This document shows, piece by piece, positions 19,367-50,660 of a stretch of 64,000 nucleotides of DNA (positions within the stretch are counted from its first letter, which is position 1; each line of letters starts with the position of its first letter). Origin of the DNA: Trichoplax adhaerens (lineage: Eukaryota; Animalia; Placozoa); the NCBI RefSeq assembly GCF_000150275.1, contig NW_002060965.1, positions 825,834-889,833 of the forward strand. Reading direction: 5' to 3'. Position numbers and translations under genes: made by a program. The notes below the pieces were generated by a model. That model made no database searches. It was not told where the DNA came from and saw nothing but the letters and a program-made list of their open reading frames with translations.

Positions 19367-21244
19367 TCAGAATAATAATTGCTTTTTCAACAACGTTATT
19401 TGCTGATCATTAAATTGATATAAACCAGGATAATGTAATCGTTCAATTTCTAATTGTTTCATTAATAATTTTATGGCCAATTGGGCGTCTTCTCCTTGCA
19501 AATGGAATCGATCAGCTTTTTCACTTTGGTTTAATTTCTTATAATCGGATAAGTAATATGCAGCTAAATTGAAATGATGGCCTTGCCAGTAACCACTTAA
19601 ATTTTGATCCTTAGCGCCACATTGAAATCGAAATGAAATTGGCATATAAGCCATCTTACCAGGGAAACATCTCTTTCTAACATTTTCCATTAAATCCAAG
19701 GGGAAATTTAAATGTAAGTTATCATATTGCAGTATAATTGAGTTGCCATTACGAATGGATGATAGTACAGTATTGAAAGCAGATCTCCTAGCATACAATA
19801 ATCTTTCAAGGCTTATTTCCACAAATTGATACCTTTTAAGACTGCTATCGTATAACTGAGTTTGTAATTGTACACTAGCTTTCGATGAACCAACAACCAT
19901 TAATGTAAATTGGTCGTCATGAGTATGGTTATAATAACGTTCAAGTTGCCTTAAAAAAAATCGAAATGCATTAATATTTTCATTGGCAATCATAATAACA
20001 ATATAAACGTGAACTTTGTTATTCCACTGTAAATCGACAAGATTACATATTTTATCTGTACTACGATATTTATATAAATATTCCGAGATGCGATAGAGCG
20101 GCTTTCTAAATTTTTCTTTAATGATAATATCGACTAGATAACGACTTCCACGCGCACGATCTGATTTCTGTTCAACACCATGGACATGAACTAATTCAAA
20201 TTTCCCTTTATTTTTTTTATTAATATGATATAGAAGTGATTCAACTATGCGGTAAGCTTCTTCTTTCTCGAATTCATGAATGGAATTGCTGACATCATTT
20301 CTACTGGCGACAGGATTAAATCTTCCATAGATCTGATGCTGAATAGTGGATAAATAATACATAATGTTCACTACGTTAACACTCCGTTCAGGTGGTACTA
20401 CATAGCTTGGACGACCATAAGAGCAGAATTTTAATGCTTCATCCAGATAACGTCGATTTAATCGTGGTAATAAATGGAAACTTTGATTGAATTTAGCAAG
20501 TTGTTCTAGCGACTTAATTGCAATCGTTGGTGTTCGAGGAGAAGTTGAATTGACTGTTGGACTATGATGGCGTGAAATTTTGATATAATTGGAAGGTAAT
20601 GAGATAGATCGTCGCGATATAGTATGATATGTATTGGATGGATCAGTTCGAGACATTTTCCAACCGACCTTGATAAATCCTCGACCAGTGGCACGTGTAT
20701 GTATAGCTTCGATCCAATATTTTCTTCTACTATCTAAACGGATAAAATTGGAAATTTGTTGATGTTGTTGCTTATTTTGCTTAGATTGGAATAATCGATA
20801 GTCGACTTGAGCAATTTTTTTAGCATTATCAGGATTAGTATCGTGACTAAGCCATAGCTCAGCACCATCATCAGCAACGATAGCAAATTGATAATAGGAT
20901 GTCACTTCAGGATGGATATAGCCGAAAATTCTTTGGCCATGACTACCGCCATCAAATTGCGATTGGAATTGATCAATGGCTTGACAAACGGTTGGATTAT
21001 GAGGGAAAGTCGATAGTTTTCTTAAATCGCCTATATGATTAAGACAGTTATCGCTACTTTCCCAACGATACAAGCATAAATTGCCTCTTGTATTAACTTC
21101 TTGAACGTTTCCTTCATGGCATTGACAATAAGGCATTGAAATTAGATCTTGAGCTCGATTAAATTCTCGCGTGTAGAGTACTATTAAATATAAAATGCCA
21201 ATCGATAATAGGATAACCAATTTACTCTTACTAATCTTGGTCAT
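19367..21244 (-). CDS. B4GALNT3/4-like PA14 + GT7/CHGN glycosyltransferase paralog 1; catalytic motifs degenerate, PA14 DD intact
   Basis: 625-aa single-exon ORF with an N-terminal TM. PA14 region reads 'GQRIFGYIHP..YQFAIVADDGAELWLS'. It has 'VEQKSDRARGSRYLVD'. Catalytic positions are altered: YDNLHLNFP (vs DLH), HLQGED (vs WGGED), and no terminal His cluster. Confidence 0.88.
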   Translation of the reverse strand: MTKISKSKLVILLSIGILYLIVLYTREFNRAQDLISMPYCQCHEGNVQEVNTRGNLCLYRWESSDNCLNHIGDLRKLSTFPHNPTVCQAIDQFQSQFDGGSHGQRIFGYIHPEVTSYYQFAIVADDGAELWLSHDTNPDNAKKIAQVDYRLFQSKQNKQQHQQISNFIRLDSRRKYWIEAIHTRATGRGFIKVGWKMSRTDPSNTYHTISRRSISLPSNYIKISRHHSPTVNSTSPRTPTIAIKSLEQLAKFNQSFHLLPRLNRRYLDEALKFCSYGRPSYVVPPERSVNVVNIMYYLSTIQHQIYGRFNPVASRNDVSNSIHEFEKEEAYRIVESLLYHINKKNKGKFELVHVHGVEQKSDRARGSRYLVDIIIKEKFRKPLYRISEYLYKYRSTDKICNLVDLQWNNKVHVYIVIMIANENINAFRFFLRQLERYYNHTHDDQFTLMVVGSSKASVQLQTQLYDSSLKRYQFVEISLERLLYARRSAFNTVLSSIRNGNSIILQYDNLHLNFPLDLMENVRKRCFPGKMAYMPISFRFQCGAKDQNLSGYWQGHHFNLAAYYLSDYKKLNQSEKADRFHLQGEDAQLAIKLLMKQLEIERLHYPGLYQFNDQQITLLKKQLLF

Positions 21245-24200
21245 GACGACTGTTTGGCTTGATGCTTTGATGATCTCGGTAAGAATAAGTTTAAAATTGA
21301 ATAATTATCCTTTCACATACGTCGTTTATGAAATGGACAAGCTGAAGGATTCAATTTAATTCATGGTTACTACCACTTTGTCATTCTTGCTAAATCCAAG
21401 CGATCATAACGTAAGATCTACTGCAATCTACTCAAAAATTGAAGAAATAAAAAATAGAGCCAATCAGTCACAGTTATACTGTTGTAATGTAACTTAGTAT
21501 TGTGATTGTAGACTGTTAGCCATGTTTAGTATAATATACGGTAGATATTTATCCTAAGAGATATTTGGTAGCCATAACTATAGACTGTAGTAGTATAAAC
21601 TCTATGCTAGAGTACAAATGACTATATACAGTAAGGTGTTGAGTTATTAATAAGGTTCTAGGTAAAAATAGAATCGTAAATCATATATTAGGATATGGTT
21701 AATTTATTATACTTTGGTCGGTGTGAATAATGTCTACATAAATACTGTATTCGTATCCATATCAAATTAATGATAGTCCGCAGTAGAATAGTGTTACTAA
21801 GAATAATTTAACCATGTGTAAAATAAGGTAAAAGGTTGCCATACGGATTGTAGCTGCCAATGTTACGAAAAGTATAAAAGCATGCAACTTTCGATTATTC
21901 TATTCGTTCGTTGTAGAAGTCTTTAGTAGTAGTATTCGGCTAGAGTAGAGCTGTGTGTAGTTAATCTTTGTATACGATTCAATAAAGCCCTAATTTTTCT
22001 AAAATTGGGAATTTCGTGATCGGTATATATCACAACTGTACTAGTATGTACACAGAGAAATAATAGCAGCAATTCTACAGATATTTTTTAACTACATTAT
22101 TGAAGTCATGTATAGAATAGAAAAGGGAAGAAAAATGCTATAGTTAGAGTAGGATAATTCATTGGAAAAAGAACAAGGTCATTAATGTTTGATCTGGTTG
22201 AACAATAAAAATCAAAACAAAAACTAGTAATTCTGCTGATTCTCTAATACAAGAAATGAAAGAAAGGAAATAAAAAGAATAAATATCTTTAATTCTACTG
22301 AACTTTACCTACAATTACGACATAACATGGCCTAAATCGAGTTGTTCTATTCAATTTTGTATGACTGAATAATGATTATCTGACTTGAATAGATTTAGCT
22401 ATCCAAAACAAATTGAATTATCAAGGGTATTTTTCCATATAAAGTTTTCAATGTCTTTTGCTTTTCTTCCCTACTATTTTAACGTAAATCAGGATAAATT
22501 AATCATCAACGGCGTTTACTGTATTTGACATTCGACCCAACTATCACAAGACTACAAGAAGCATTTCAAATAGGATTAATTGTAGCTTATTTCCTCTTCA
22601 TCAGATAGCAATCGGGTAAGAGAAACGGACAAGAATCATTGTTGAACAGAGAGTACAGTAGTAGTCAATTTTTCTTTCATTCGCTTTCTCTCTCTCTCGT
22701 GGTAAAAGGTTTTTAAACGCTATAACATTGAAACAGGGTGTAACTTATACTTTATTTAGTCGATCCATTAGGCATGAAATAATGCTAACCGATTGATTGG
22801 CTGTGCATAAGATGTCATTGAAATTCTTGGAATTTTACGAGAACAATTTTGTAATTCAATTAGTGAATAACATTTAGCAATACGAAAGAGATGGCTGTAG
22901 TTTAGCGTTGGTCTTCGCCAATAACCAGATTGATACTGTAACGAATTTGATGATAGTTTTATCATTTTGATACTATCCTAATGTAGATTAAATAACAGCA
23001 AAGGTTATTTTCATTGATCTATCTACTAAAATTTTCGGTTAGTCTAAAATGTATCGATGTTAACCTATACCCAAAGAATGACATTTGGCAATAGATTTAA
23101 ATATTTTTTTCAATGAAAATAAATTACTTTAGATGGACAACAACTTTTGCTAACGATACTTTATGTTGACGATATTGGGTGTTAATTTAGTTGGGGGTGA
23201 TTCAATTGGGAAAGGTATGATGATCGATACCATAAAATACAAAAAAAGAAAGATGCCCTGTCGGTCGATTAGCATTGATATAAGGCCTATCGTATTTGCC
23301 AACATGGTTAGAACTCCAAACAAAATTACATCAAAACGGCCAACATCAAAGAAAAAGTGCTGAGCCTTTAACAACTACCGATTGTTCATGGCCACTTCGT
23401 CACGTAGACTGATAGTATAGCGGTTTTCAAGTTCTTTATGGGATTTTAATGACTGTTGAAGCTATCGATTTCCACGATGAAAATCACAATTAGAATGTTT
23501 CAAAATAGAAACGGGAGACATTTATCGAGCGAAAAATTCAATGATAAATGATGGTGATAAAGTCGATAATAATAAAGTTATAAAATGACTACCGTTATTC
23601 TAGCAAGATTTTTTTAGGTAGACAATATGACTAGTTTTGCTGACTGAGATTGTTGCAGTCTTTAAAGTAAAATAATTCTATATCGCTATCCCATTAAGGC
23701 TATGGTAGCGGAAACGGGATAGGCTATAAGTGTGACATCGATTAATGTATATCAGGGATAGCGTAGGATAATTGACTGCCTATCGATGTTGTCAAGTGAA
23801 TAAGAACTCATTTTATCGTTAGGAAAACTTTGGCCAGAGACTTTAAGAGAAAAGGTTATTTAACGGTTATCTATCGCTATGATAGAACGCAAAAGGATAG
23901 TACTTAAAGTATTTTTCTTACTTACATGTAATATTGAATATTGTATAAAATGTTCAAGCAGAAAAATTGAAGAATTCAAGACAAGCGAGATGGGGCAAAA
24001 CGGACGACCGGTAAACCCTTGGCGTACGACTATCTTTTCCACTGTTAATTTTTCTTTGAAGTCTTTTTTTCTCCTTTTCTTCCTTTCTTTAATACGCTAG
24101 AGTAGCCTAACGCAAGTGATTGAAAAGTATTTAGTCGTTATACTACCATTAATTATATATTAGTGTTGGCTAACAGTAGGTGAAGAAGACAATCAAAGTT

Positions 24201-24779: not shown

Positions 24780-26990
24780 GAAATAATGAGTATATTCTTT
24801 CTTCAATCACTTCCTTACCAATCCATGATCCATAAACCGTTATCGAGTTCATTTACGGAAATGAAATTGCGCTTTCCCTACATTGGAATTTACACGTAGA
24901 ACTATCAATTCCGTCATTAGACGTGTACGGAAATGATCACTATACAGTATAATTAATGCTTCTTTATCGACCATGTCCTTGTCAATCTAGGATCATCATA
25001 CTAGATCACTAATGCTTCTTTTAATAATTCATTAGACTGTTGGCGAGTTTATTTACAGAAATGAAATTACTTCCTTCCTACGTTGTATTTTATGCGTATG
25101 TAGAACTGTAAATTTCATCTCTGAATGTGTCAGAAAATCCTACTGTATCATTTATGCTCCTTGTTCATCCCCTGTCTTACCAATAAATAATCCAAAAGTA
25201 GTTATCGAGTCTATTTACGGAAAGAGAATTTCTTTCTTACTACACATTAGAACGATAACTTATACTACTAGATGTGTATAGAAATAGTCATGATAGAATC
25301 CACCATACTCCTTCATCCATCTCTTCTTTGCCAGTAAACAATCCATAAGACTGTTATGAAATTGACTTCTTCCTCTATTACAAGGCGTCATACTTCAGTT
25401 TATGATTATAAATTCTATCCGTATATGTATAATTTATATGCCCCTTCTTCAATCGCTTATTAGCCAATACATAATATAGAAGACCGTTATCAAGTATGGA
25501 AATGAAATTGGTTTCCTGCCATGTTGTAGTTTATGTAGATTATAGCGTATGGATAGAAATGGTGATCATCAAACTCACGCTCTCTTTTTAATTACATCCT
25601 TGTTAATGAGCGTATAGGATCCATAACGCTGCTATCGAGTCCATTGATGAATACGAAATGGCTTCTTTTAGAACCTAAAGCTTATTCCCACCCCGCTGAG
25701 CTAGAGGAACAGATTATATATAACAATCATTTCTATCACAATACGACATACGTATTCGCATGTCTGGAAATGATGATCATAACGCGCTGTCTTCCATAAA
25801 TTCTTTACCAATAACTAATCGATAACACTACTATAAAGTGGCTTTATGGCAATCAAGTTGCTTTCTTCTAATCCGCTAATCCAATCGATTACTTTATAAA
25901 CCACTTTACCACTTTGTGCACGTGAAAATAATAATTAACATACAACACTCTTTCTTTCAAAGCACTTTCTTGGCAATAAACTTATCAATGCTATCGAGTT
26001 TGTTTACAGCTGTGAAATTGCTTCTTTCTCTTCAATTGATCCAATGACATTGTAAGCTACTATAGCACGATACTCTTTCTTCCAAGCTACTATCCCAGCA
26101 ATAAATGACCAACGACTTGCTATCGTATTCATTCACGGCAATAAAACTGCCTCTTTCTGTCCTGTGATCCAATAGATTATAAACTATTCTACCACTTTAT
26201 GTGAATGAAAAGAATGAACAAGTAACACTTTCTTTCAAGCAACTATCCTGATAAAAAAAGTTACCAGCAACATTGCTATCGAGTTCATTGACGACAGTGA
26301 AATTGCTTCTTTCTATCCTCTTGATAGATTATAAACTAATCTACCACTCTATATGCGTATGAAAAGTAAGAACAAACAAACTCTTTCTTTCAAGCTACTA
26401 TCCTGGCAATAAATTGCCAATAACCCTGCTATCTCTTAACGACATTAAAAATTGCTTCTTACTATTCTGTTGATCCGATAGGCTATAAACTACTATATCT
26501 TGAATGCCTATGAAAATAATAACCACTCTTTCTCCCAAATCACTAATCATGGCAATAAATTGTCAACAACCCTGGAATCAAGTCCGTGTACAGAATTAAA
26601 AATGGCCCACTTCATTTTCGTTGATCCAACTGACGACTCTAGATACCATCTAATGAGTGTGTAGTGTAGGCGAAGAGAAATGACAGAGGAACAGACTAAA
26701 TACCTTATTCCTTCCTCAATTGATTCAGTCTATTACCTTACAAGTAGCTACTCGCATAACATGAAAATAATCATCACTAAAAACGTATTGAACTTACAAC
26801 GTATACGGAAATTCAGCAGGCAATTGCTGTTTAATGGATCCAATGAATCCTTTCCACACAATTTTAGCTACCACACGCAATCGATCTTCGCACAATGCTT
26901 TTCTCCTAACTAAATCTTGACAATAAAATGTCAATAATACGATCATAGAGTTCATAGGCCGGAACAAAAAATTGGCCTAGGACGACGATA
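24780..26990. repeat. Degenerate tandem array A, ~13 units of ~130-200 bp
   Basis: Recurring core 'ctg(t/c)tatcgagttcatttacgg..atgaaattgcttcttt' at ~24836, 25037, 25199, 25350, 25483, 25629, 25828, 25989, 26119, 26274, 26427, 26573 and 26940. Confidence 0.8.
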
Positions 26991-27109
26991 ACTTCTGCTT
27001 TAGTTGATATAATTGAACGTACTTCTTGTTTTAACACTTAAAATTTATCCACTGTCAAGTGTAATAATAAGCTGGCCTCAATGTAAAAATATCATTGGAC
27101 AACATAATA

Positions 27110-30350: not shown

Positions 30351-30419
30351 AATTCAATGACGGACTCTTTCATGATACTGTTTGTACTGAACAGTATATT
30401 AATGCTTTCCGAACACCAT

Positions 30420-30965
30420 TCTTGATGATCGCATAGCCCGTACTATCAAAGGAGTATAAGAAACTTGCAAACGTGTATTGAAAATAACTGATCATGACCG
30501 CAAACCATAAGGATAATTGCATAGCCGTAATGTACTATCAAAAGAGTATAAGAAACCTGTAAACATGCATTGAAATAACTGATCATGGTCGTAAACCATG
30601 ATTGGAGACTACATAGTCGCAGTGTACTTTCAAAGGACCACAAGTTAGCCTGCAAACATGCATTAAAAATAACATAACTGATCATGGCCGTAAACCATAA
30701 TTGATGATTGCATAGCCACAGTGTACTTTCAAAGGAGCATAAGAAACCTGCAAACATGTATTGAAAAATAACATAACTGATCATGACCGTGTACCGTAAT
30801 TGATGATTGCATAGCCACAGTATACTTTCAAAGGAACATAAGAAACCTGCATACATGTATTGAAAATAATGGATCAAGGCCGCAAATTATAACTGACGAT
30901 CGCATAGCCACAATACACTATCGAAGGAGCATAAGAAATCTGCAAACATGTATTGAAAATAACTA
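30420..30965. repeat. Tandem array C, ~6 units of ~90-99 bp, fairly homogeneous
   Basis: 'gcatagccacagtgtactttcaaaggagcataagaaacctgcaaacatgtattgaaaa..taactgatcatg' at ~30431, 30519, 30610, 30710, 30809 and 30902. Confidence 0.92.
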
Positions 30966-32599: not shown

Positions 32600-33030
32600 G
32601 AATTTTACTAATACGGAGTGTGCATAACTTACTGTTGGAAGGGATTTTTAATGACTAACAAAATTGATAGCAATTGCACCTTAATTAATCACGATGATTA
32701 ACCACGTAAAATATCAGATCAGCATTGTCCTATATGGACATGAAGTTCTACTTGGACACAAGCTAATTTAAAATAGTGTAATCTTCCTTATTTGTTCTGT
32801 AGAACCTCAACAGCGATTGTATCATAATCACTGTTATTAATTAATGCTATTAACTGCATAGGATATCGAATTGGCAATGACCTAGTCCATTTCGTTGTCA
32901 TTAAACGTAAGTTAATTTAAGATGGTGTAATCTTTCTTGTTCCAATAGTCCATTGAGGGAATCTGCAACGATTGCATGATCATTGCTATCATTAACCGCC
33001 CGAGATATCCAATTAGTGCGGCCTATACCC
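32600..33030 (-). repeat. Up to three decaying tandem copies (~150 bp period) of the last ~42 codons of paralog 2, downstream of its stop codon
   Basis: 33023-32901 translates to GRTNWISRAVNDSNDHAIVADSLNGLLEQERLHHLKLTYV*, versus the native GNAYSISRAVDHRDSGAIVADFINEPLEQERLCHPKLTYVQV*. The next copy ends RLHYFKLACVQV. Confidence 0.85.
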
Positions 33031-33048
33031 GGATAGACTGATATTTAG

Positions 33049-34956
33049 TTATACTTGCACATAAGTCAGTTTTGGATGGCATAATCTTTCTTGCTCCAGT
33101 GGTTCATTAATGAAATCTGCCACGATTGCACCAGAATCTCTATGATCAACAGCACGAGATATCGAATAAGCATTGCCCTCATTAATTATCTTAAGTAAAT
33201 CACTCGAGTAATAAGCAATAGCATCAAACTGATTCATTTTCCATATGCCGTTTGGTGCGGCAGAGTTGTGCCTACATCGTTCCTGGAAAGGAATAGGTAA
33301 ATAAAATGATTTTCTCCTTATGGATCTTTTTCTAACATTATCCAATAAATCGTCTGGTAATTGTAATTTGATATCATAATGTAAAACTATTGATTCAAGG
33401 TCAACGATACGTGATATAACACCTTCTAATCCAGCTAACAAGGTATAATTGCAATAAGGACTAAGTTGGATGATCTCATGTCGGATGAATAAGCTTCGTT
33501 TTAGAATCTCTTTAATCGCTGGATGGATTATTTTGCAATCAATTATGTACAATTTAAAGAAACTATCACGGCTGCTGTTGTAATATTGATTCAGTCGATG
33601 GACAAAGTTGGTAAATAACAAATTAAAAGTCGGACCATAATGTCGATGGTCAAGCATTAAGACTATATTAACATTAGTTGTTGGATCCCATTGTAGATCA
33701 CTCAATTGACATAATGTTTGTAAATGCGAAGAGTAAAATAAGTACTCAGAGACTCGCCAAATTCGTTGATTTACTTTCGATTGGATGACTAAGTCAACCA
33801 AGTAACGTTTCCCTCTTTGTTGATCAATTTTTTCTTCTATCCCGACAATTTTGAGCAACTTATATTGATGCTCTGCTTCATGTTGATTCAATTTATACAT
33901 AAACTGATTGGCAATTTGATGAGCTAATCCTGGATCGAGTAATCGATTACAATGAATAATATGGTCGCCATATTGAGTCATGACAGTAAATTTTCCATAA
34001 ATGCTGTACGGCACTGTAAGTAGAAATTGCATTAGTTGACGATATCGACCGCGAAATCTTTTGCTAGCGATGACATAGCTAGGATTGCCATAAGTTGACG
34101 CAGGTAATGCACCAGTAAGAAAATGTCGTGGCAAAAATGGCAAGGTATGATATCGACTTGAATAGCTGGCAGGATCGTTATTGCTTGCAAAATCAATCGA
34201 TTTCTGCTTAGCTGGTTCTTGTTTCTGTGGTAAATATTTCGAGGAAGATTTATCTATCGTAGACGGTAAAAGGTAATTGTTTGGATCTGGCATAGAGATA
34301 GAATTTCCCTGGATAGGTAGGTAACTACTCTCAGTTTTATTACGAAATTGATATTTCCAACGGAGTTGAATTAATCCTTCAGGTGCAATCATGGTATATA
34401 AGACTTGAATATAATATTTACCAGGTGCAGTTAGCTTCATTTTTTGAGATTCTATCGATGGATAATGATTAATAGAGTGCTTTTCCTGTTGCTTAGCTGA
34501 TTCTTTCGATTGATCATGGTATAGAATTCTAGCTGCATTGGAAGGATTTTTGTTTGTGCTAATCCATAATTCTGCTTTGCCATCGGTTGTCAGTGAAAAA
34601 GTATAATCACTAGTCACAGGTGGATGAATAAATCCAATAATCTTCTGACCATAGCTAGTTCCCACCCCTTGCCATTGAAATTGTTGGATAGAGAAACAAG
34701 TGGTAGGATGTAATGGAAAAGAATGTAATTGACGTAAATCGCTGATATTATTAACGCAATTACTATTAAATTCATAATTCCATTGGTGAACACACAAATG
34801 GCCTATGCTAGATCCGGTCAAGTTTCTCCGCTTACATTGGATGCCTACGATGTATTTTAGAATGGATTTGGATGGATTTTGACGAAAATAGATGAGAACT
34901 GTGTTGAGAATCGATATAACAATGGCAATAAATACACAGAGTCCAAGAAATTTCAT
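33049..34956 (-). CDS. B4GALNT3/4-like PA14 + GT7/CHGN paralog 2; probable pseudoenzyme
   Basis: 635-aa single-exon ORF with a TM. PA14 region 'YGQKIIGFIHPP..TTDGKAELWIS' and 'EEKIDQQRGKRYLVD' are present. YDIKLQLP replaces DLH and WGGED is absent. It ends ERLCHPKLTYVQV. Confidence 0.87.
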   Translation of the reverse strand: MKFLGLCVFIAIVISILNTVLIYFRQNPSKSILKYIVGIQCKRRNLTGSSIGHLCVHQWNYEFNSNCVNNISDLRQLHSFPLHPTTCFSIQQFQWQGVGTSYGQKIIGFIHPPVTSDYTFSLTTDGKAELWISTNKNPSNAARILYHDQSKESAKQQEKHSINHYPSIESQKMKLTAPGKYYIQVLYTMIAPEGLIQLRWKYQFRNKTESSYLPIQGNSISMPDPNNYLLPSTIDKSSSKYLPQKQEPAKQKSIDFASNNDPASYSSRYHTLPFLPRHFLTGALPASTYGNPSYVIASKRFRGRYRQLMQFLLTVPYSIYGKFTVMTQYGDHIIHCNRLLDPGLAHQIANQFMYKLNQHEAEHQYKLLKIVGIEEKIDQQRGKRYLVDLVIQSKVNQRIWRVSEYLFYSSHLQTLCQLSDLQWDPTTNVNIVLMLDHRHYGPTFNLLFTNFVHRLNQYYNSSRDSFFKLYIIDCKIIHPAIKEILKRSLFIRHEIIQLSPYCNYTLLAGLEGVISRIVDLESIVLHYDIKLQLPDDLLDNVRKRSIRRKSFYLPIPFQERCRHNSAAPNGIWKMNQFDAIAYYSSDLLKIINEGNAYSISRAVDHRDSGAIVADFINEPLEQERLCHPKLTYVQV

Positions 34957-37849
34957 GACTTGGCCATTTAAGGATCACTGATCAGAATATCTAATCTGAT
35001 TATTCCGGATAGTGTTTCATATCCACTTTTAATAGGAAATTCAGAAAGATTGTTTTAATTGTATTAGTTAGTAATTCCAGTTGAGTTATGTGTCTTTGTG
35101 ATCTTAGTTGGGCTCTTTAGGGGATATTTGTCCAATTCTGCTATATAGATTTTATAAGGCTACAACATCAATCCTAGAAGATGATTTTTAGAAACTATCA
35201 TTAAATCGTATTAAGAGATATACTTTATTAACATTTTACTGTAGGAATAACCCTTCAAGCCATTGTTCTCCCCTTAAATGTTCAAAGGGGTTATGGTAAC
35301 AGCAAAAGCGGAATTGAAAGTTATTTTTTTAGACTATTTCGTTCGCTTCTTCCGTTGGCGCATCTGCATTAAATCACCAAGTACTGCCTTAAATAAAGGA
35401 GAAAGAATATGGCTACCTGTATACTACTGTATCATCACAATCTAATTTTAAGCATGTACAGTATATAAAAAAGTGCATCAAATATTCCTAATTGTATGTT
35501 GCGTAGACCATAAATAAGGTTAAAACTGGACATGTACGAGTATACTCGAAATGTGTCGCGATTTGCCTTTAAAATGTCTATTGATCATTAATGTCACTGA
35601 AAGTAGACATAAAGTAGACATGAGAATTATATCTATCGACAAAAAGTAATTTTTTAGCTAGACTCGTGGCTTAACTGCGTTAAATATGCAGCACATGCAT
35701 TAATAGTTTAATCGAAAATCGAAATTGCCATTTCTAATTTAATGTAGCATTGACGATTAGCAAATGTTTCACTGCTGCAAGAGAAACAACTCTCATTCAC
35801 TCTTAAAAAGTCGACGAAAAGAAGCTATCTTTAGCCTCTTTGCTTAACTTAGCCTTACTTTACCAGCCATGAACCCCTTATGGAGACATAATATCTACTG
35901 CGGGTAGTGTCTTCGCAGCATCATTTCAAGCACGTATAGGTTGAAAATAGCGTATCTAACATTCCTAAATGATCTATGCATCGATCGTAAGCTTAAATTC
36001 GTACATTTCTATTAAATAGTCTAAGGGATGAGTGACGTTATTTTAAAATCGGTGGAAAGTACCGTACTGCAATTAACCTATTGAATTAATTTTATTTAGC
36101 TTCTCTAGGCCTTCTAAAATTGACGACTTCGACACTATTTAGGATTTAGGTCCATCAATAATAATAAAATATAAGCTAATTTGATGCAAGTATATATAGA
36201 AAAATCACGTTTATCATTTCTAAATCTTCTATTGTAAGGAATGTAAGCAAGTTTGAGGATGGACATGCTACTAAGGGATTAGAATGGATATCCATTCTCA
36301 CAAGTAAAAATATTGGATGGAATTATTGAAGCATAAATGTTAGGGTGGCCTTGAGAGCTCTCTTTAAATCGAATTACAGTTTTTAAACATTCCTCCTTCA
36401 TAGGGTTCATTTAGCTTTGTTGAATCGATTTCAGCATAAATAGAGCAATAATGTAAAATCATTTCTAGTAATATCATTGCCAGCTAATTTCATGCATCAA
36501 TCCTAAATCACATGTTGCACTTAGCGTAAACAAGATTAAAATTAATTTCTTGGAAATGGATATTTGTGTTGACGAGAAAAAAATTAAGCGGGACCATGTT
36601 AATGGAGAAATAGACTAGAGAGTTATTGAAATCGCTTGAGATTCTAATAGTAGCTTGTTCTTTAGTATTGGTAGTGATATTTCGAGGTAAGATTTACGTC
36701 TACCGTAACTGTATGAAATGGATCATCCATTCGATTTAACATGAACTAGAGCTATATCAGCTATTTTCCCTGTATTTTAGCAATATGAAATGTATCCATG
36801 GATAGAGTTATGACATATGGGAATGAAAGCTATAATTTATTGCAGGTACTAATAGTCATTAATTGGTGATTAAAGTATAATATAGACCATTAATCTGAAA
36901 ACAATATAGTTCAAGGAAAGGCCTCTGACATAAAAATGGCAATGTTTTTAATTCACCATTAGTTTTAAAAGAAAATGATCAAAAATTTCACGGTGATAAC
37001 ATAAAATTCAGTTTAGCTTTAGATTTTACCTGATTGAAACTATGGTAGCAGTTACCCTACTGATGGACCAAAAGAAATTTTGATTTTTCTTGCAATTAAC
37101 ACTGGCTTGGAAGAACTTTGTGACAAACTGGAAAGAAAGGGAGTCAACTGGAATCGATAGGTGTTTTGATTCCGTTTCTGGATTCTACAGTCCTTTCCAT
37201 CCTTACTATTAAACAATTTTAAACTAGTTTACCAAGCTGTCTTGTCAATTTTACCATAATAATAGCTGGATTGCATGATAAGAATGTCAGTAACATGCTT
37301 CGACTGCCTCTTACTTTATGAATAACAATTGATAGCTTGGAGCAACATTTTCGCTCTATTGTGACTTTCATCTTCAACACTATACCAACGTCAATCAATT
37401 AATGGCGGTACGGCATATTAATTTTAACTGAGAAAAAATTGCTTCTGTTTTTCAATTTATCGTCAATACTTAATTTATCCTATCCACTTGTGCAGTAATG
37501 CTCTTCTAGCAAGCAGTATCGTCTTGAAGAAGGATAAGCAGTCGCCATTACCAGCCCTAATAGTTTAATTTAATAATTTCGACATTGTACATTACCAATT
37601 ATCGTGATTTAGATACCTTCATTTGAGCTACATTATATTGTTCTCTTAATAATGAGAATAATTCATGGCTAAAAGGTAAAAAATGACGCAACAAGTTACC
37701 TTTCTTCTTCTTATGCTCTACCTTTTCAGCTACTGCCATATTGTTGGCATGACTAGCATTCTGTATAGAATATGGACATGTTGAGCGAAATAATCTGTTT
37801 ATTAAAGGACAACGGAAATCAATTTAAGACTATCCTTAATAACAAATAA

Positions 37850-38560
37850 ACTAGCTAGTGATTGATTGCTAGTAGAATCATCATAATATGTTATCGCATG
37901 CTAATGATGTTATTTTGTGATGATAATGCAATTTTACATTTTTACTCGATATTGGGCCATAGCAAGTGATAATTGAGCCGAAATAACAACAACATCAAAG
38001 GTTTGAATTATGGCCATTCTCATTCTTGACTTGGTGAAGCAGAATCAACAGTTATATCTTTCCATAATAATTATAATGCTGGTTTTTACTGCAGGTTTTA
38101 CTTGATATCGGATTGTAGTAAGTGATCGATTAAGCAGAAATGGGCAATAAGTACGAATGAAAACATTGATTGATGGATCGTAAATATTCGTAACTGATCA
38201 AATAAAGTAATCGGTTGCTAATAGAAATCATCATAATATTATTACGTTAATTAAATCCTTCCATGATGATCTGGTAGTTGTTCATTTTTTGCCTGATACT
38301 GGGCTATGAAAAATAATTAGATGAATTGAGATAATAATAAACTATATTGAGAATAACAATCTATCGTAGTTTATTCGTAGTTTTATGAAACTGAATGATT
38401 AGTTATGAATAGGGATCGCGATAATACTCGTATTTTCCAACACTAATCATACCATTTGGTTGTAATAGCGTTATTCCAGATTTTCATTTGTTATTGAATT
38501 ACGGTTTGTTTCGTATGGAATGAATTGAATAAAAATGGCAATAAACAATAATAGGAGTAC
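37850..38560. repeat. Degenerate direct duplication, ~350-380 bp period
   Basis: Collinear shared blocks: 'ttgcta.tagaa.tcatcataatat' (37866/38215), 'gata.tgggc.at' (37947/38295) and 'aaatg.gcaataa' (38138/38533). Confidence 0.65.
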
Positions 38561-40882: not shown

Positions 40883-42877
40883 TTAATTTTTCCAATTCAA
40901 TTTACGATGAAAGAAATGGAACATCCCAGGGTGGCAAAGCCTCTCAATTTCCATTTGATGTTTTAGTATTCTATCAGCCATTTCAGAATCTTCGCCACCC
41001 CATTTAAATTTAAATTTTTCAACTTCCATACCACCAAGAGCATCATAATCACCTTTATAATAGGCCATAATACCGAATCCATCTCTTTCGTAGAATCCGT
41101 TAGGATTGGATAAATTATGCCCACAATATAATCGAACAATAATGGGCATATAAACACTTCTTTTTCGAATACATCGTTTGCGAATATTATCTAATAAATC
41201 ATGAGGGAAATTAATATGTAAATCATACTGTAATACTATACTTTCGGGATCATCGATACTGCGTATAGCAGTATCCATACCGATCGTTTTAGAGAAATTT
41301 TGATAATCTTTATACATAGGTATGACTTTATAATTTTGTAAAGGGCTAGCTTTCAATTCTTTTAATACATCCAAATTTTCATTAGAATCACGGCCAAAAT
41401 CAGCAATAATGACACTAAAATGTTTATCGCCAGTTTGGAGGTAGAAATTACTTAATTCTTTGATAAAATAACGCACCCAACGTGATTGGCCTTTAACAGC
41501 CAAGCAAATATGAACATGGGTAATAGGATTCCAGACCACATCACTGATTAAGCAAAGAATTTGTGAAACTTTACGATGATAAAAGTACTCGGAGATGCGT
41601 TGAATTTTTTGGTTGGTATTATCTTTGACTACCAAATCGAATAAGAGTCGGCTACCGCGACGAGGATCGACTTTCTCTTCAACGCCAACATTTTCTATTA
41701 AGGTATATTGGTTGCGATACTTATCATTTAAAGCTGTCATAAATCGTGCAACAAGTGAATTGGTGCGTTTTGCACTGGCGATACGATTACATGATCGTAA
41801 GCGGTCACGATCAAATATTTTATAATCGAATTTACCTTGGACCATGTGTGCAATTTCTTGTAATTTATTGACAGCACCATAAGTGCGTAATCTAGTTTTC
41901 TTCGTGACAATGTAAGTGGGTCGAAAGTAGCGACATGTCGGTAAAACAATGAGATTACGATGAGCTATTTTAGGTATAACATGATAGTTACGACTAAAGT
42001 TGCTTTCTGGCTTACGAAATACTTTACTAATGCCAATACCTGGTTTGACAAATCGTTGGACCATATGACTAGGTGAATGATAATTCGGTGAATGAGGAAA
42101 GAGAGATAAGTAATCTGTATGAATGGCTTGAGGCAAAGATTGAAAACGACCATTAAAATATTTCCACCTTACTTCAACATATCCCTTGGCTAAGCGTTGA
42201 CCATGTAATACTTCAACAAAATAAGGCCGATTAGCGTATAAATAAAACCAGCCCGATAATTGTGTCTCAACCCATTGCCATCTTTTCTCAGGGAATTCGA
42301 CATCCCACGGTCTTTGCCATGGCTCTACCCAAGCGATCCTTTTGGCTTTGCTTGGTTGAGTACCATTACTGAGCCATAACTCGGCGAAACTATTGGTAGT
42401 TAAGACAAAGGCATAATAACCATCTTTAGGAGGATGAATATAACCAAATATTCGTTGACCATAAATTTCAAGATCATAGAAATAGCGAAATTGATTTATA
42501 GCATGGCAAACTGAGGGTCGATTGGGGAAATATTTCAATTCACGTAAATCATCGACATCTTCTATACAATCGGTGAAATTCTCCCACCGATATAAGCATA
42601 ATTTCCCTCGGCCACGAGTTTTATCATTAGGATCGATATTACAAGGGCAACCATTTACGTTGTTGATGTTGTGATTATTGGTATTCTTCTGATAATTATT
42701 GTTATCGTTATTGATTTGGTTAATTTCCATTGTAAGATCATGAATCGTTTCAGATTGTATACTTGATCGTGACGTTGAGAAAAATGGTTTACGCTGATAG
42801 ATTAATAAAATAGCGAAATCGATCACAGCAGCAAGTTGTAATAATAAAAGAAATTTAATCACCGTACGTTTCATCAT
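40883..42877 (-). CDS. B4GALNT3/4-like beta-1,4-N-acetylgalactosaminyltransferase paralog 3; catalytic motifs intact
   Basis: 664-aa single-exon ORF with a TM, an Asn-rich stem and PA14. The GT domain has FSKTIG, YDLHINFP, GFYERDGFG, KWGGED and ERLCHPGMFHFFHR, matching the B4GALNT3/4 C-terminal pattern. Confidence 0.92.
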   Translation of the reverse strand: MMKRTVIKFLLLLQLAAVIDFAILLIYQRKPFFSTSRSSIQSETIHDLTMEINQINNDNNNYQKNTNNHNINNVNGCPCNIDPNDKTRGRGKLCLYRWENFTDCIEDVDDLRELKYFPNRPSVCHAINQFRYFYDLEIYGQRIFGYIHPPKDGYYAFVLTTNSFAELWLSNGTQPSKAKRIAWVEPWQRPWDVEFPEKRWQWVETQLSGWFYLYANRPYFVEVLHGQRLAKGYVEVRWKYFNGRFQSLPQAIHTDYLSLFPHSPNYHSPSHMVQRFVKPGIGISKVFRKPESNFSRNYHVIPKIAHRNLIVLPTCRYFRPTYIVTKKTRLRTYGAVNKLQEIAHMVQGKFDYKIFDRDRLRSCNRIASAKRTNSLVARFMTALNDKYRNQYTLIENVGVEEKVDPRRGSRLLFDLVVKDNTNQKIQRISEYFYHRKVSQILCLISDVVWNPITHVHICLAVKGQSRWVRYFIKELSNFYLQTGDKHFSVIIADFGRDSNENLDVLKELKASPLQNYKVIPMYKDYQNFSKTIGMDTAIRSIDDPESIVLQYDLHINFPHDLLDNIRKRCIRKRSVYMPIIVRLYCGHNLSNPNGFYERDGFGIMAYYKGDYDALGGMEVEKFKFKWGGEDSEMADRILKHQMEIERLCHPGMFHFFHRKLNWKN

Positions 42878-44352: not shown

Positions 44353-45517
44353 GGACCTCTCCAAATTTCTACTTTAAATTTCCAGTAGTCTATGTTCCTG
44401 TAGTCTACTTTAAATTTTCAATAGTCTATTGTAGAATAAACACATCTTCACTAGACGCTAAGGACCACTTCAAATTTCTACTTTAAATTTTCAGTAGTCT
44501 ATGTTCCTGTAGAATAGACACATCTTCACTAGACGTTATGAACCACTCCAAATTTCTACTTTAAATTTTCAGTAGTCCATGTTCGAGTAGAATAGACGCA
44601 TCTTCACTAGACGCTATGAACCACTCCAAATTTCTACTTTAAATTTTCAATAGTCTATTGTAGAATAAAAACATCTTCACTAGACGCTAAGGACCACTTC
44701 AAATTTCTACTTTAAATTTCCAGTAGTCTATGTTCCTGTAGAATAGACACATCTTCACTACACGCTATGAACCACTCCAAATTTCTGCTTTAAATTTTCA
44801 GTAGTCCATGTTCCTGTAGAATAGACACATCTTCACTAGACGCTATGAACCACTCCAAATTTCTACTTTAAATTTTCAGTAGTCCATGTTCCTGTAGAAT
44901 AGACGCATCTTCACTAGACGCTATGAACCACTCCAAATTTCTACTTTAAATTTTCAGTAGTCCATGTTCCTGTAGAATAGACGCATCTTCACTAGACGCT
45001 ATGAACCACTCCAAATTTCTACTTTAAATTTTCAATAGTCTATTGTAGAATAAAGACATCTTCACTAGACGCTATGGACCACTCCAAATTTCTACTTTAA
45101 ATTTCCAGTAGTCTATGTTCCTGTAGAATAGACACATCTTCACTAGACGTTATGAACCACTCCAAATTTCTACTTTAAATTTTCAATAGTCTATTGTAGA
45201 ATAAACACATCTTCACTAGACGTTATGAACCACTCCAAATTTCTACTTTAAATTTTCAATAGTCTATTGTAGAATAAACACATCTTCACTAGACGCTATG
45301 GACCACTCCAAATTTCTACTTTAAATTTTCAATAGTCTATTGTAGGATAAACACATCTTCACTACACGCTATGAACCACTCCAAATTTCTACTTTAAATT
45401 TCCAGCAGTCTATTGTAGAATAAACACATCTTCACTACACGCTAAGGACCACTTCAAATTTCTACTTTAAATTTCCAGTAGTCTATGTTCCTGTAGAATA
45501 GACACATCTTCACCAGA
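44353..45517. repeat. Young minisatellite, ~15 near-identical units of two length variants (78 and 73 bp)
   Basis: Unit: 'accactccaaatttctactttaaatttt cagtagtc[c/t]atgttcctgtagaatagac.catcttcactagacgctatg'. Starts at 44463, 44541, 44619, 44692, 44770, 44848, 44926, 45004, 45077, 45155, 45228, 45301, 45374 and 45447, plus partial units from 44353. Confidence 0.97.
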
Positions 45518-47329
45518 CATGGATGCTCGTCCGATATTAAGCATATCTTCATATGAGTGACGATATTGAGTGGCTGTTATTTCTGCCAAATTACCCGTGT
45601 AAATGAATAGGTAATCAATTTCGAGGAAGCTCGGACAACATTATAATCTATCTTGCAGCCTAAATAAACTTTTGGATAGATACGATGGTGGATGAGCTAG
45701 AAATGGTTCTTATCATTGACGGCTAAGTAAATTACTAGCATAAATGAATGGATAAAAAAATCTTGAGTAAGCTGTAAATGCCATAAAATCGCAATTGACT
45801 GTATCTGGTGACTGAGTTGTTTTTGGAGGGATGGGAAAATGAATAAAGTAAGAATGAATAGTATTGTATTAAAAAAATGTGAACGCAAATTTCATACCAT
45901 TGCTATGAAATTGAAGTCTTCACTTTTTTAAATACAAAACTACTCATTCTCCCTTTTTAATTAAACAGCCGCGATAGTTGATAGACCAGAAATGGTTCAA
46001 TCTATCTGACAGCTTGAATCATTTTTAGATAGCAACGGTAGTCAATGGACTAGAAATAGTTAAAGCAAACTAGGTCAATCTGGAGATTTCTGTAGGAATA
46101 ACTCACATGATAGAAAGTTACGGGCGATTGAACTCTCGGCCCATCAAGTCTAATCAGCATCAATAGTGCTGCCATTTTATGCAATACGATAGGCCTAAAG
46201 AGAAGTCTGCGGAAGATTTCACGGAGAATGTATTGACAAAATAGAATATACAAAAATAGGATCCAAAGAACTTTAAAACAACCCCAATTGCTATGTAGAA
46301 GACTTACTGGGCGCATATAACTCTGATATTAGCGTATATTAAATTAGAGTACAGAAATATTTTTACAACACGCTATGCCTTATTCAGGCATTTGATTGAT
46401 CCTAGTTCATGCCAAGACGGATATCTCTTCGCTGTTGACCATATACTTTGTGTATTTGTTAAAACGTTCGCTGTGTTACTCTTATCCGATGGATTGCAAG
46501 TTCCAATGTCCAATTAAATATGGCTGATTCCGTAAAAATGCTGCTGGAATTCATGATTGGAATAAATAAACTAAAACAAATAAATAAGTGCGTAAATAAT
46601 GATATCATAGGCCACAAGAGTAAAACATCAGTTGCCAACACGCCATGTTACAGTGCTGCATATCAATATCAACATAGATTATAATTTGCTAATTTACATT
46701 TTATGCTCGTAGGTAAGGTCAAGTCAAACAATATCTATAAGGCACATGGACATGATGATACAAGAATCCTTAGTTAAATCTCCCATTCTGTGTGCAACTT
46801 TCACATTGCTGCCTATCTCGACCTATTTAATTTCAAGTCTTTAAACAAACTGCAATCGCAATCTGAAGATTGAAACCTATTTCAGTTTCATACATGATAT
46901 AAACTACCAATTTTGCAACGCTTACTAATTGAATTATAATTACCAACCAATTCAGGTCGACCTGTGAATCATGATATTGTTAAGATTCAATCCTTGAGCA
47001 TGGATGGATACAACATGATGTAGGTCGTTATTTATTATTGAAGGTAAATTATGCACGCCGTCTATGATGGTAAACATCAATTCAAGGTCGTAATATTCTC
47101 AAATGCAGCTTAATATATTTCAAAATTTAAGTTTCACTAACTATTTCAAAAGGCGCATTTGCAATGATATTTCAGTGTAGTCCAGCCCCAAATTAGCTTA
47201 AGATTACAAATAATTTATGTAATAATAAAATGAAGCTTACAAGAAACTGTACTTCTTGTTTTATTATTATTATAAAGATAGCTTATCACATTCAGTTCAC
47301 GAAAATCATATCACAGGCTCTGCTAGTAA

Positions 47330-48230: not shown

Positions 48231-48764
48231 CATCAGTTTAGAAATAATAGTCAAGAAGGCTAGCTAATACGTGCATGAATTCAACAGCAATGTGGTTTAG
48301 CTCTTAACCATCGTATTATTATAAATTATACTGTATAACACTATACAACAAGATTATATACGGTCTTCTTCACCATTTTTACTTCTATACTCTTACCGTA
48401 GAAATTCTTAATAATTCAGGATATCGTGTAATAAGTTCTACATATTCCGCGATTAGAATTACATATATAGTATTTCAAACCAAGGAGATAATAAGCAAGC
48501 AACAGCGTGAAATAGAGCATTAATTAATTATTGATAGAAATTATAAATTTGGGATGCATACAGTTATGACTATGATGCCTACATTAGATATTTACAGCAA
48601 GTCAAAATCATGTATTAGGTAACAAATAGCTCTCTTAGTGAACTTAATTTTAAGGTAAAAATTTTCAAATTGAACACCCACTATGCGTAGAACAATGATA
48701 GGCAGATCTTAGGAAAGCATTAGGATGCCTTTCAATGCTGATAGTGTGGTTCACTGTCATATTG

Positions 48765-50660
48765 CTAATCATGACGATATTGTCGAAATAGTAATGGGTA
48801 GCTAGTCCTTTCGATGTCTAATTCATTTTCTATCAACTTTCTAAGTAGCATAGCAAAAGCTTTTACAGGCTTGTCTTGATGAATAATCCCTTGATAATCA
48901 CTGATATAACAAGAAAGGATATTATAATAATCACGATCAACGTATCCATCCGGTCTTTGGAAGTTGAATCCGCAGTTTAAATTAATAACCAATGGCGCAA
49001 AACATTGTCTACCTTCTATCGTCTTTTTCCGAATCTCTTGCATCAACTGGCTTGAAAAATGGACAGCAGGATCAAAATAGAATAGGATACTATTAGTCAG
49101 ATTAATAGGCTGTTGAAGAACCTGTTTTAACGGAGAAATAATATCACTTGACTGGGCAGTATCGTCGATCCAGAAATATTTTTTCTTTAGTCTACTTTTC
49201 TGTAATTTCGCTTTAATCTTAGGAGTACTTGTAAACCCCTTGTCTATAATCGTAAGTGTGAAGTAATCGCTATCTAGGCTTTGGGTATACCATTTCTCGA
49301 TTTCCAGGACTGCTCGTAGTACAAGTGAATACTTGTGATCATGATTAATCATCATGATCATATTCACAGGTGCAGTGTTGGACCATTGAAAGTCGGCGTC
49401 ATAACACCACTGATGATTGGTTTTATTTTTGTAAAAGTACTCCGACAACTGGTAATGTTGGCTACCTTGGGCAACTTTTAGTTCGATAAAATATCGACTT
49501 CCTGCGGATGGATCTAGCTTCTCTTCAACGCGAATAGTCTGTAACAATGTTAGTGGTTTGCCTATCTGGTTATAATAACTCTGATATCTTGTAAAGATGT
49601 CTTGAACAACGCTTTTAGCAGCTCCTTGAGCTAGAGCAGGAATTAATTCAATCTTTCCACGTACAGGAGAAATATAGCTGCGAAATTCATCACCAAATAC
49701 ACGATATGCTACCGCCATAACTTGTTGAAAGCGATTTCGAGTTGTCAATAAATAATTAGGAAGGCGATTATGACAGTATTGTAAGCTACTAGCATGAATG
49801 ATACCATCCGATATTACGAATCGTTGGAGATGATAAAATTGAACGATTCGATTAAGTTGGTAATTAATTTGGTAAGGTAGATGAAATGATTTCCAATCAA
49901 TTTTCCACCCTTCAACGTGATGGCTAGCTTGTTTCTGAGCTACCGAATTGGCTATATCATCTTCTTGCAATAATGATATATGACGATGACTGATTACGCC
50001 TAAATTTTTCTCAATTTTTCCATCATAATATTTCCATTTGACTGCTAAAAATGATTTTGTATTACCAGTCACTTGTAAAAGCTCTATCCAATACTGACGA
50101 CCTTTTTCCATATAAATCCACGGGCTTTTTGTTGGTAATTTAATCCTCAAGTTCATCCTTTGCGAACCTAGAAAAGTATGAGCAATACGAAATATATTCC
50201 GACTGGTATTATCTCGACTTAACCATAACTCGCAGCTGGATTTACTGACAAGTTCAAATGTGTATAAAGCGTTGAATGGTGGATGAATAAAACCTACTAT
50301 TCGGTTACCAACGTTAACTGGCGACTGATCAACTTGTAGTCTGTCTACTGACCGACAATGTAAAGGTTGGAAAGGAAATGTCTTTGCTTCCTTCAAATCA
50401 TCGATATGCTCTAGGCATCGATTATGATTAATCCATTGGTATAAGCATAATTTACCGTCGAAATCTTTAGGTGTTTGTCCCTTGCAATGGCACGAAATTG
50501 AGCCTACCTTGGACTTTATCCTTAGTGCGCCTAAGTTGGTCTGATTGAAATTATTAATCAATAACTGCATAGGCCGGCGGGTATCACTTCCAAAATCAAA
50601 GTAAAAAATAACGATAAATATAATGACAATCAGTTGTAAAAATATAAATTCCACCTTCAT
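48765..50660 (-). CDS. B4GALNT3/4-like PA14 + GT7/CHGN paralog 4; probable pseudoenzyme, most divergent
   Basis: 631-aa single-exon ORF with a TM. 'GNRIVGFIHPP..SKSSCELWLS' and 'VEEKLDPSAGSRYFIE' are present. FDPAVHFS replaces DLH and there is no GFG or WGGED. Confidence 0.86.
   Translation of the reverse strand: MKVEFIFLQLIVIIFIVIFYFDFGSDTRRPMQLLINNFNQTNLGALRIKSKVGSISCHCKGQTPKDFDGKLCLYQWINHNRCLEHIDDLKEAKTFPFQPLHCRSVDRLQVDQSPVNVGNRIVGFIHPPFNALYTFELVSKSSCELWLSRDNTSRNIFRIAHTFLGSQRMNLRIKLPTKSPWIYMEKGRQYWIELLQVTGNTKSFLAVKWKYYDGKIEKNLGVISHRHISLLQEDDIANSVAQKQASHHVEGWKIDWKSFHLPYQINYQLNRIVQFYHLQRFVISDGIIHASSLQYCHNRLPNYLLTTRNRFQQVMAVAYRVFGDEFRSYISPVRGKIELIPALAQGAAKSVVQDIFTRYQSYYNQIGKPLTLLQTIRVEEKLDPSAGSRYFIELKVAQGSQHYQLSEYFYKNKTNHQWCYDADFQWSNTAPVNMIMMINHDHKYSLVLRAVLEIEKWYTQSLDSDYFTLTIIDKGFTSTPKIKAKLQKSRLKKKYFWIDDTAQSSDIISPLKQVLQQPINLTNSILFYFDPAVHFSSQLMQEIRKKTIEGRQCFAPLVINLNCGFNFQRPDGYVDRDYYNILSCYISDYQGIIHQDKPVKAFAMLLRKLIENELDIERTSYPLLFRQYRHD

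Follow-up and report, generated by a model that had tools for sequence, protein, structure and literature searches.

Candidate pseudo-glycosyltransferases, probably kept by selection, in a tandem gene array of Trichoplax adhaerens

What becomes of a glycosyltransferase that has lost the residues with which its relatives transfer sugar, and can such a protein be worth keeping? The question is raised by an array of seven paralogous genes of the placozoan Trichoplax adhaerens, in a window of 64,000 nucleotides (contig NW_002060965.1, positions 825,834 to 889,833; C1392:825834-889833 within an assembly of 105.6 Mb and 1414 contigs). The genes, numbered p1 to p7, are full-length open reading frames (ORFs) for proteins of 625 to 664 amino acids, all of the B4GALNT3/4 type: a hydrophobic N-terminal anchor, a PA14-type domain, and then a CHGN (PF05679) catalytic domain. 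Four of them (p3, p5, p6, and p7) keep the catalytic motifs, and three (p1, p2, and p4) have altered ones. We consider it likely that p1, p2, and p4 are pseudo-glycosyltransferases kept by selection, that is, nonenzymatic proteins that recognize glycans or glycoproteins and modulate their live paralogs. Based on their sequences, the three are predicted to be Golgi-type type II membrane proteins with the architecture of the LacdiNAc synthases B4GALNT3/4, in which the anchor, the PA14 domain, and the GT-A scaffold have been kept.

Catalytic residues of paralogs 1, 2, and 4

The ORFs lie where the original prediction had placed them, and its description of frames uninterrupted for about 1.9 kb in AT-rich DNA is borne out: GC content at these ORFs is 30 to 35%, and a stop-free frame of 625 codons at this composition has a chance of ~1e-21, as estimated from base frequencies. 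The interval that had been assigned to the altered copies, 19367 to 50660, does hold all three, but it also holds the active-type p3 (40883 to 42877, minus strand; 664 amino acids, with D-L-H, WGGED, and HFFH). In an alignment of the seven paralogs, p3, p5, p6, and p7 keep D-L-H, G(F/Y)G, WGGED, and HxxHR, and D-[LV]-H is the norm of the family, being shared by homologs with this architecture in invertebrates and vertebrates. When p3 is aligned by phmmer with human CHSY3 (9q8z and 9o4g), D-L-H lines up with D718/D720, WGGED with E806/D807 at its E-D, and HxxH with H831/H834 (residue list from PMC12748766; numbering offset worked out by hand from the alignment). The authors of that study call these CHSY3 residues essential for GalNAc transfer, made the point mutants D718N/D720N and H831A to probe it, and describe CHPF as lacking the residues and inactive (PMC12748766).

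Each altered copy departs from this pattern in its own way. The p1 protein (19367 to 21244, minus strand; 625 amino acids; ortholog RDD45567.1 in Trichoplax sp. H2) has an anchor, a PA14 domain with a DD motif, and a CHGN-type GT-A domain in which the motifs read YDNLH, LQGED, and YQFNDQ. It keeps the D and H of D-L-H with one residue inserted, as well as the E-D of WGGED; Q and D stand at the two His columns of HxxH, and the uracil-site Asp is replaced by Gly. In p2 (33049 to 34956, minus strand; 635 amino acids; TRIADDRAFT_61523/XP_002117503.1; H2 ortholog RDD45569.1), which also has the anchor, PA14, and GT-A parts, the first motif is YDIKL, nothing resembles WGGED, Tyr occupies the first His column, and the protein ends at TYVQV before the second. 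In p4 (48765 to 50660, minus strand; 631 amino acids; H2 ortholog RDD45572.1, a 601-amino-acid model without the anchor), an anchor, a weak PA14 domain, and a GT-A domain are accompanied by FDPAV, a gap of six residues at WGGED, and RQYRHD, with R and R at HxxH. The first Asp of the metal motif is present in all three proteins; the second metal position is Lys in p2 and Ala in p4.

Domain scores agree with the alignment on this division of the seven genes, which the original prediction had drawn in the same way. Glyco_transf_7C (PF02709), the Pfam domain that spans WGGED and HxxH, matches only p3, p5, p6, and p7 (E values of 1e-13 to 6e-17), with no Pfam match to it in p1, p2, or p4. For CHGN, the scores of 30.4 bits for p1, 31.4 for p2, and 25.4 for p4 stand above the cutoff of 23, versus 60 to 98 in the four active-type copies. 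The PA14 domain scores 35 bits in p1 and 33 in p2 (cutoff of 24), and 18.1 in p4, which is under the cutoff.

To avoid cherry-picking of motifs, we based the count on alignment columns without variation among a set of 15 active-type homologs drawn from placozoans, other invertebrates, and vertebrates; there are 39 such columns. Of the 18 such columns in the PA14/stem part, p1 keeps 17, p2 keeps 16, and p4 keeps 15, whereas only 11, 12, and 11, respectively, of the 21 GT-A columns are kept (Fisher p = 4e-5, the three proteins pooled). As a leave-one-out control, active rows keep 39 of 39 to 44 columns. The columns lost include the nucleotide-loop Trp, the uracil-site Asp (p1 only), the third Gly of GFG, the IGG pair, W-G-E-D, and both His residues. 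Those structural motifs that had been listed as retained, E-x-K, G-x-R, and ER..P, coincide with invariant columns E358, K360, R368, E601, R602, and P606.

We conclude from these comparisons that the catalytic losses in p1, p2, and p4 are real and beyond chance, and that, as far as sequence can tell, the three proteins lack the Mn/UDP-GalNAc (donor and metal) site, p2 and p4 also lacking the catalytic base. The statement that all three had lost the catalytic signature holds for p2 and p4; for p1 it was too strong, as D..H and E-D remain and the pocket region is the most conserved part of this protein.

Constraint on the altered copies

The age of the p1 alterations is indicated by an intact ortholog of 633 amino acids in another placozoan (P0122; L015:206-2107 in Logan assembly SRR30664517, with an identical protein in SRR30664516). 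It came from a homolog search with the seven-paralog alignment, whose matches were all relatives of the first row; there is no poly-A at either end of its contig. The two proteins are 69% identical, with dN of 0.20, dS of 1.2 to 1.8, and a dN/dS ratio (omega) of 0.11 to 0.23 depending on the method, well away from the value near 1 that would have marked pseudogenization. The active control, p7 compared with its ortholog P0001 (L016:834-2831, a contig from an ENA metagenome), gives 78% identity and omega of 0.07 to 0.15; with dS near saturation, the omegas of both ortholog pairs are rough. Within the GT-A core, omega is 0.08 to 0.17 for the altered p1 versus 0.08 to 0.12 for the live p7. The altered motifs themselves are largely shared, YDNLH being unchanged in the ortholog, LQGED becoming LQGDD, and YQFNDQ becoming YQFDNQ, and the most conserved 40-residue windows of p1 (82 to 90%) are those that hold the altered nucleotide loop and the D-N-L-H segment. 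An ESM Atlas search with the p1 catalytic part returned only CHGN clusters.

The intact frame and the conserved replacements at this distance are, at the level of sequence, robust evidence of constraint, and they indicate that p1 persisted with its altered motifs since before the two placozoan lineages split. We distinguish p1, a slow-evolving, ancient member with a strongly conserved, remodeled pocket, from p2 and p4, which are fast-evolving derivatives.

For p2 and p4, the comparison available is with Trichoplax sp. H2 (GCA_003344405.1), whose contig was followed across the whole array and aligned to the window. Between the genome analyzed here (H1) and H2, p1, p2, and p4 together differ by 22 substitutions in 5,682 bases (0.39%) and by no indels, versus 0.83% substitutions and 1.4 indel events per kb in 39 kb outside the family. 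The deficit is significant both for substitutions (Fisher p = 1.8e-4) and for indels (0 versus 8 expected; P(0) = 3.4e-4), and the four live genes behave alike, with 0.45% substitutions and 0 indels versus 11 expected. Per-gene dN/dS between H1 and H2 is uninformative, each gene having 0 to 7 synonymous changes, and pooled counts and the noncoding baseline were used for this reason. When variants from RNA contigs of other strains are included, p4 shows 8 synonymous and 11 nonsynonymous changes (p = 0.025). Taken together, p2 and p4 have 26 changes, 15 of them nonsynonymous, versus the 79.5% expected if neutral (p = 0.0096), a ratio of nonsynonymous to synonymous polymorphism (pN/pS) of ~0.35.

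A second line of argument is the survival of the frames themselves. With an indel-to-substitution ratio of 0.17 and stop-creating changes making up 5.5 to 6% of point changes, each unit of neutral divergence should bring ~366 disabling hits; a 1.9-kb frame would then have a chance of at least 5% of staying open only up to ~0.8% neutral divergence. Nine to 10 invariant catalytic columns have been lost in p2 and p4, and p4 is also short of six residues by deletion. Because an open frame survives only ~0.8% neutral divergence, and the branches leading to p2 and p4 are 1.5 and 2.5 changes per site long (versus 0.55 to 0.82 in active copies), the catalytic losses in these two genes must have arisen under selection.

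Silence of the genes would have pointed to decay, and it was not found for p2 or p4: both have transcripts in several studies. Of the 31-mers of p2, a fraction of 0.82 to 0.96 is present in ten small, RNA-type assemblies and one of 0.51 to 0.61 in three runs recorded as RNA-Seq. For p4, RNA contigs of four runs from four studies were mapped onto positions 48700 to 54650. In each of the four, collinear contigs span p4 from its stop to its start, reaching from below 48700 up to 51250, and none falls on the intergenic positions 51287 to 51485, between p4 and p5. The p5 contigs of two runs (X2 and X4) have the joints 52675>52522 and 52458>52348, bordered by GT..AG on the minus strand. Because the p5 contigs are spliced and the intergenic stretch is empty, the assemblies are RNA; contigs of this kind cannot rank expression levels. 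As a lead rather than as evidence, the Pfam term PA14 (3 genes) is enriched in module gc001a, of ventral epithelia/pan-epithelia, in Table S3 of a four-species placozoan cell atlas (PMC10580291); no entry for the genes of the array turned up in the part of that source considered here.

Overall, we conclude that p1, p2, and p4 are, by these sequence criteria, not decaying pseudogenes and that all three appear to be kept by purifying selection, p2 and p4 by virtue of the pooled pN/pS and the argument from frame survival.

History and surroundings of the array

In a maximum-likelihood tree from a quick search, the seven clustered genes form one clade (SH-aLRT of 100) nested among two unlinked Trichoplax copies and other invertebrate homologs. 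Because they form one nested clade, the array is a placozoan expansion. Within it, one group comprises p2, p4, and p1 with its ortholog, with support of 97 for all columns and 86 for the catalytic part. In the PA14/stem part alone only p1 and p2 group (support of 85), and the position of p4 is not resolved. The grouping of the three may reflect long-branch attraction. In all three the third Gly of GFG is replaced by N or D and the first beta-strand contains a Met, which may be read as a hint of one origin. The excess in branch length is concentrated in the catalytic part, where the end branches of p2 and p4 are 5 to 6 times those of the live copies; in the N-terminal part it is ~1.4 to 1.9 times for p2 and ~2.7 to 3.8 times for p4. 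The p1 lineage is about as slow as that of p7.

The unusual end of p2 has a local explanation. A tandem repeat at 32697 to 33179 (minus strand) consists of four units of ~150 bp, of which the first encodes the C-terminal ~45 residues of p2; the three further units, in the 3' flank of the gene, are degenerate copies that repeat "...EQERL.H.KLTYV stop" (repeat families D1 to D3, with spacings of 142 to 154). Because its last ~45 codons are the first of four tandem units, the C terminus of p2 has been remodeled by local tandem duplication.

The remaining members of the array are of the active type. The p5 ORF (52625 to 54610, minus strand; main exon, 52675 to 54610) yields an mRNA that is spliced near its 3' end, with GT..AG introns at 52523 to 52674 and 52349 to 52457 on the minus strand in 2 RNA runs. 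After the main exon come exons at 52458 to 52522 and from 52348 downward, so the last 17 codons of the ORF, a tail beyond HxxHR, are intron; the H2 model of this gene has 649 amino acids over 2.1 kb. The others are p6 (56431 to 58386, plus strand; 651 amino acids) and p7 (59760 to 61748, minus strand; 662 amino acids), the latter having the best PA14/GLEYA match of the family, with the DD motif, and serving as the active control in the selection tests. The coding regions of p1 to p4, p6, and p7 look single exon, and that of p5 does not. Vertebrate B4GALNT3/4 homologs are multiexon genes. A family that is mostly single exon may hint at a retrogene origin.

The array extends past the window. At C1392:893177-894768, near the scaffold end, lie two 3' fragments like p6 and p7: one is a 5'-truncated copy of p6, ~99% identical to its 3' half (H1 p6 versus the H2 copy), and the other is a p7-like 3' part cut off by the scaffold end. 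By sequence the pair looks like a recent inverted segmental duplication of p6 and p7, and H2 has the same. Two full-length copies of the active type, on scaffolds C1405 and C1411, are unlinked to the array.

Other features of the window lie between the family members. Between p3 and p4, at 44404 to 45518, a 78-bp unit is repeated in tandem 14.7 times (90% matches); this is the stretch in which H1 and H2 diverge most (3.9% substitutions plus indels). Five copies of a 99-bp tandem repeat, at 30474 to 30955, overlap a TTG-start ORF of 143 amino acids (30446 to 30877, minus strand). Two small multiexon genes, at ~25800 to 27000 and at 37000 to 38050, are annotated in H2 with 162 and 140 amino acids, respectively, and have no Pfam match.

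Public names for the altered copies are those of enzymes. The H2 records call p1 and p2 N-acetyl-beta-glucosaminyl-glycoprotein 4-beta-N-acetylgalactosaminyltransferase 1 and p4 B4GALNT3, and the UniRef name of the T. adhaerens p2 protein is "Hexosyltransferase"; exact-protein look-ups of the H1 p1 and p2 proteins matched no record. In view of the loss of motifs these names are misleading and can be corrected.

Possible roles and known systems

If p1, p2, and p4 are indeed pseudo-glycosyltransferases, they would act without sugar transfer. They would recognize glycan or glycoprotein substrates through the PA14 domain and the remaining acceptor side of the pocket, and the neighboring active paralogs would thereby be modulated. 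Tentatively, such modulation could come about by competing for substrates or presenting them. The original prediction had called the altered copies noncatalytic subunits, chaperones, or lectins; that they are noncatalytic and functional agrees with selection, with the transcription of p2 and p4, and with the selective nature of the catalytic loss, while the specific roles are at this stage putative.

Several observations weigh against this reading. No ortholog of p2 was found outside H1 and H2: a word search, to which fragments shorter than 0.55 of the query length are invisible, gave the H2 copy only. An exhaustive search of representative sequences likewise gave the H2 copy as the only near relative of p4, where any orthologs of >50% identity would hide in that cluster, and scans of JGI metagenomes returned no relatives of p2 or p4. 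With no ortholog of either beyond Trichoplax H1 and H2, long-term constraint on them would depend on the argument from ORF survival together with small recent counts, and p4 alone is not significantly under the noncoding substitution rate (P = 0.14). Because only p1 and p7 keep the DD motif, it is doubtful that p2 and p4 could serve as lectins by way of the canonical PA14 site. The adjacent Asp-Asp (D189/D190 in human B4GALNT3; DcisD of fungal adhesins) occurs only in these two and their orthologs, within codons ~120 to 130 of p1 and ~135 to 145 of p7, and the GLEYA match is likewise limited to p1 and p7. At this position p2 has D-G and p4 has K-S, and five copies in all, including three active ones, carry N-S, T-G, D-G, or K-S. 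The p1 protein, with its E-D and possible metal ligands, may not be dead. A complex prediction for the catalytic parts of p7 (residues 265 to 645) and p1 (residues 245 to 625), which scored 0.09 and 0.02, is neutral on binding.

An alternative that is possible but that we hold with some doubt is that each altered paralog is an obligate partner in the manner of CHPF, heterodimerizing with an active one and needed for folding, Golgi exit, or activity; formation of a complex with an active copy, as CHPF forms one with CHSY, is by analogy also a conceivable, if rather uncertain, route of modulation within the preferred reading. CHPF and CHPF2 are inactive yet essential partners of CHSY1/3 (PMC12748766). 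The altered copies belong to the same CHGN family and have lost the same donor and metal residues as CHPF, their genes are interleaved with active ones in one array, and transcripts of p4 and p5 occur together in whole-animal RNA runs. An AlphaFold2 model of p2 from a 40-sequence alignment has a mean pLDDT of 80, with 86 to 97 in the glycosyltransferase domain, a confident PA14 sandwich, and a helix at residues 2 to 26; the former WGGED loop (residues 597 to 605) falls below 50. The p2 fold is thus predicted to be kept, with the proviso that a homolog-guided model cannot prove function. In keeping with a partner role, the best Foldseek matches of this model are both chains of CHSY3-CHPF; after them come PA14 lectin domains, from adhesins of fungi and from an ice-binding adhesin of a bacterium. 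However, the placozoan proteins have PA14 in place of the GT31 domain, and no coiled coil is evident. The p7-p1 prediction, neutral as it is, scored 0.09, and dimerization of B4GALNT3 is not reported in PMC11254600 (in which the word "dimer" is absent) or in PMC13018970.

It is unlikely that the altered copies are still enzymes, p1 above all, acting as a transferase or hydrolase with a remodeled metal or donor site, by a metal-independent mechanism, or on another donor. In favor of this, p1 still has the first Asp, followed by a His that stands one place further on, together with the base-holding E-D pair, and the remodeled pocket makes up its best-conserved parts (82 to 90%; core omega of 0.08 to 0.17), which seems beyond what a pure scaffold would need. 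Yet p1 has lost 10 of the 21 GT-A columns, among them the nucleotide-loop Trp, the uracil-site Asp, the third Gly of GFG, the IGG pair, W-G, and both His residues. The E-D base is missing from p2 and p4, where Lys or Ala stands at the second metal position, and Glyco_transf_7C matches none of the three.

Least probable, and in our view only a slight chance, is that p2 and p4 became pseudogenes only lately, with frames still open by chance and transcription owed to promoters that survive: their very long branches (1.5 and 2.5 versus 0.55 to 0.82, with a catalytic domain evolving 5 to 6 times faster than in active copies), the failure to find orthologs outside Trichoplax, the position of the p2 C terminus within a degenerate tandem duplication, and a recent substitution rate of p4 not significantly under the noncoding one would fit, but a frame that survives ~0.8% neutral divergence is hard to square with the loss of 9 to 10 catalytic columns and a deletion, as are the 0 indels between H1 and H2, the pooled pN/pS of ~0.35 (p = 0.0096), the 15 to 16 of 18 PA14/stem columns kept, and transcription in several studies.

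Returning to the reading of p1, p2, and p4 as pseudo-glycosyltransferases kept by selection, a more speculative extension is that they form an ancient placozoan subfamily of PA14-bearing, dead GT7 proteins, probably with a single origin before the genus split, that regulate the neighboring LacdiNAc-synthase paralogs in the manner of Golgi lectins or act as their partners, with the pocket of p1 remodeled and strongly conserved. If this proved true, the CHGN family would have arrived at the "polymerizing factor" principle a second time, independently. Pseudo-glycosyltransferases as such are already known (CHPF in the same Pfam family, and IRX9); the variant here is the combination of PA14 and a dead GT7 domain, in the LacdiNAc-synthase branch and in a lineage-specific array. 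In the literature on the gene identifier, on placozoan glycosyltransferases, and on glycosyltransferase pseudoenzymes, we found no paper on p1, p2, or p4 and no noncatalytic paralog for the LacdiNAc-synthase branch.

The locus is of interest since the demonstration that noncatalytic paralogs of glycosyltransferases are essential in machines of glycan synthesis is recent (CHPF with CHSY, in structures of 2025 and 2026). It offers a natural study set, in which a very simple animal has three dead copies next to four live ones, and p1 is a dead copy conserved like a live enzyme, with the altered pocket as its best-kept part. The function of a dead GT-A pocket joined to a PA14 lectin is made directly testable by this locus.

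Among known systems, CHPF and CHPF2 are the closest in kind. Like p1, p2, and p4, they have a Pfam CHGN/GT7-type GT-A domain from which the DxD and the donor-binding Glu-Asp/His residues have been lost while active paralogs keep them, and the p2 model has its best structural matches in the CHSY3-CHPF chains. The analogy with CHPF and CHSY that had been offered for this locus is well founded on these grounds: the Pfam family is the same, the DxD and donor residues are lost, and CHPF is inactive but essential (PMC12748766). The differences are as clear. In CHPF a GT31-like domain lies at the N terminus and there is a coiled-coil helix; the protein acts as an obligate heterodimer, pairing with CHSY through a long coiled-coil helix with two glycosyltransferase domains per chain (PMC12748766). 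The placozoan proteins carry PA14 instead, belong to the B4GALNT3/4 branch, and arose in a placozoan-specific tandem array.

The best named relatives are B4GALNT3/4, with 35% identity over the catalytic half, and these vertebrate LacdiNAc synthases have the same order of type II anchor, PA14, and CHGN as the proteins of the placozoan array. They are active enzymes of ~1000 amino acids, whereas p1, p2, and p4 have ~630 amino acids, and single-exon coding regions, and lack the full set of catalytic residues. In B4GALNT3 the PA14 domain is a lectin that the enzyme needs in order to act on glycoproteins; it adjoins the catalytic pocket and is joined to the catalytic region by a disulfide (PMC11254600 and PMC13018970). 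The key residue N252 of the human PA14 domain is not conserved in the placozoan copies, as judged by eye from the alignment of the seven paralogs. More distant is the plant GT43 protein IRX9, which is reported to have a function independent of catalytic activity (PMC4132061). It is likewise a protein of glycosyltransferase fold with a catalysis-independent function; its family and pathway are unrelated to those of p1, p2, and p4, for which it is a precedent of kind only.

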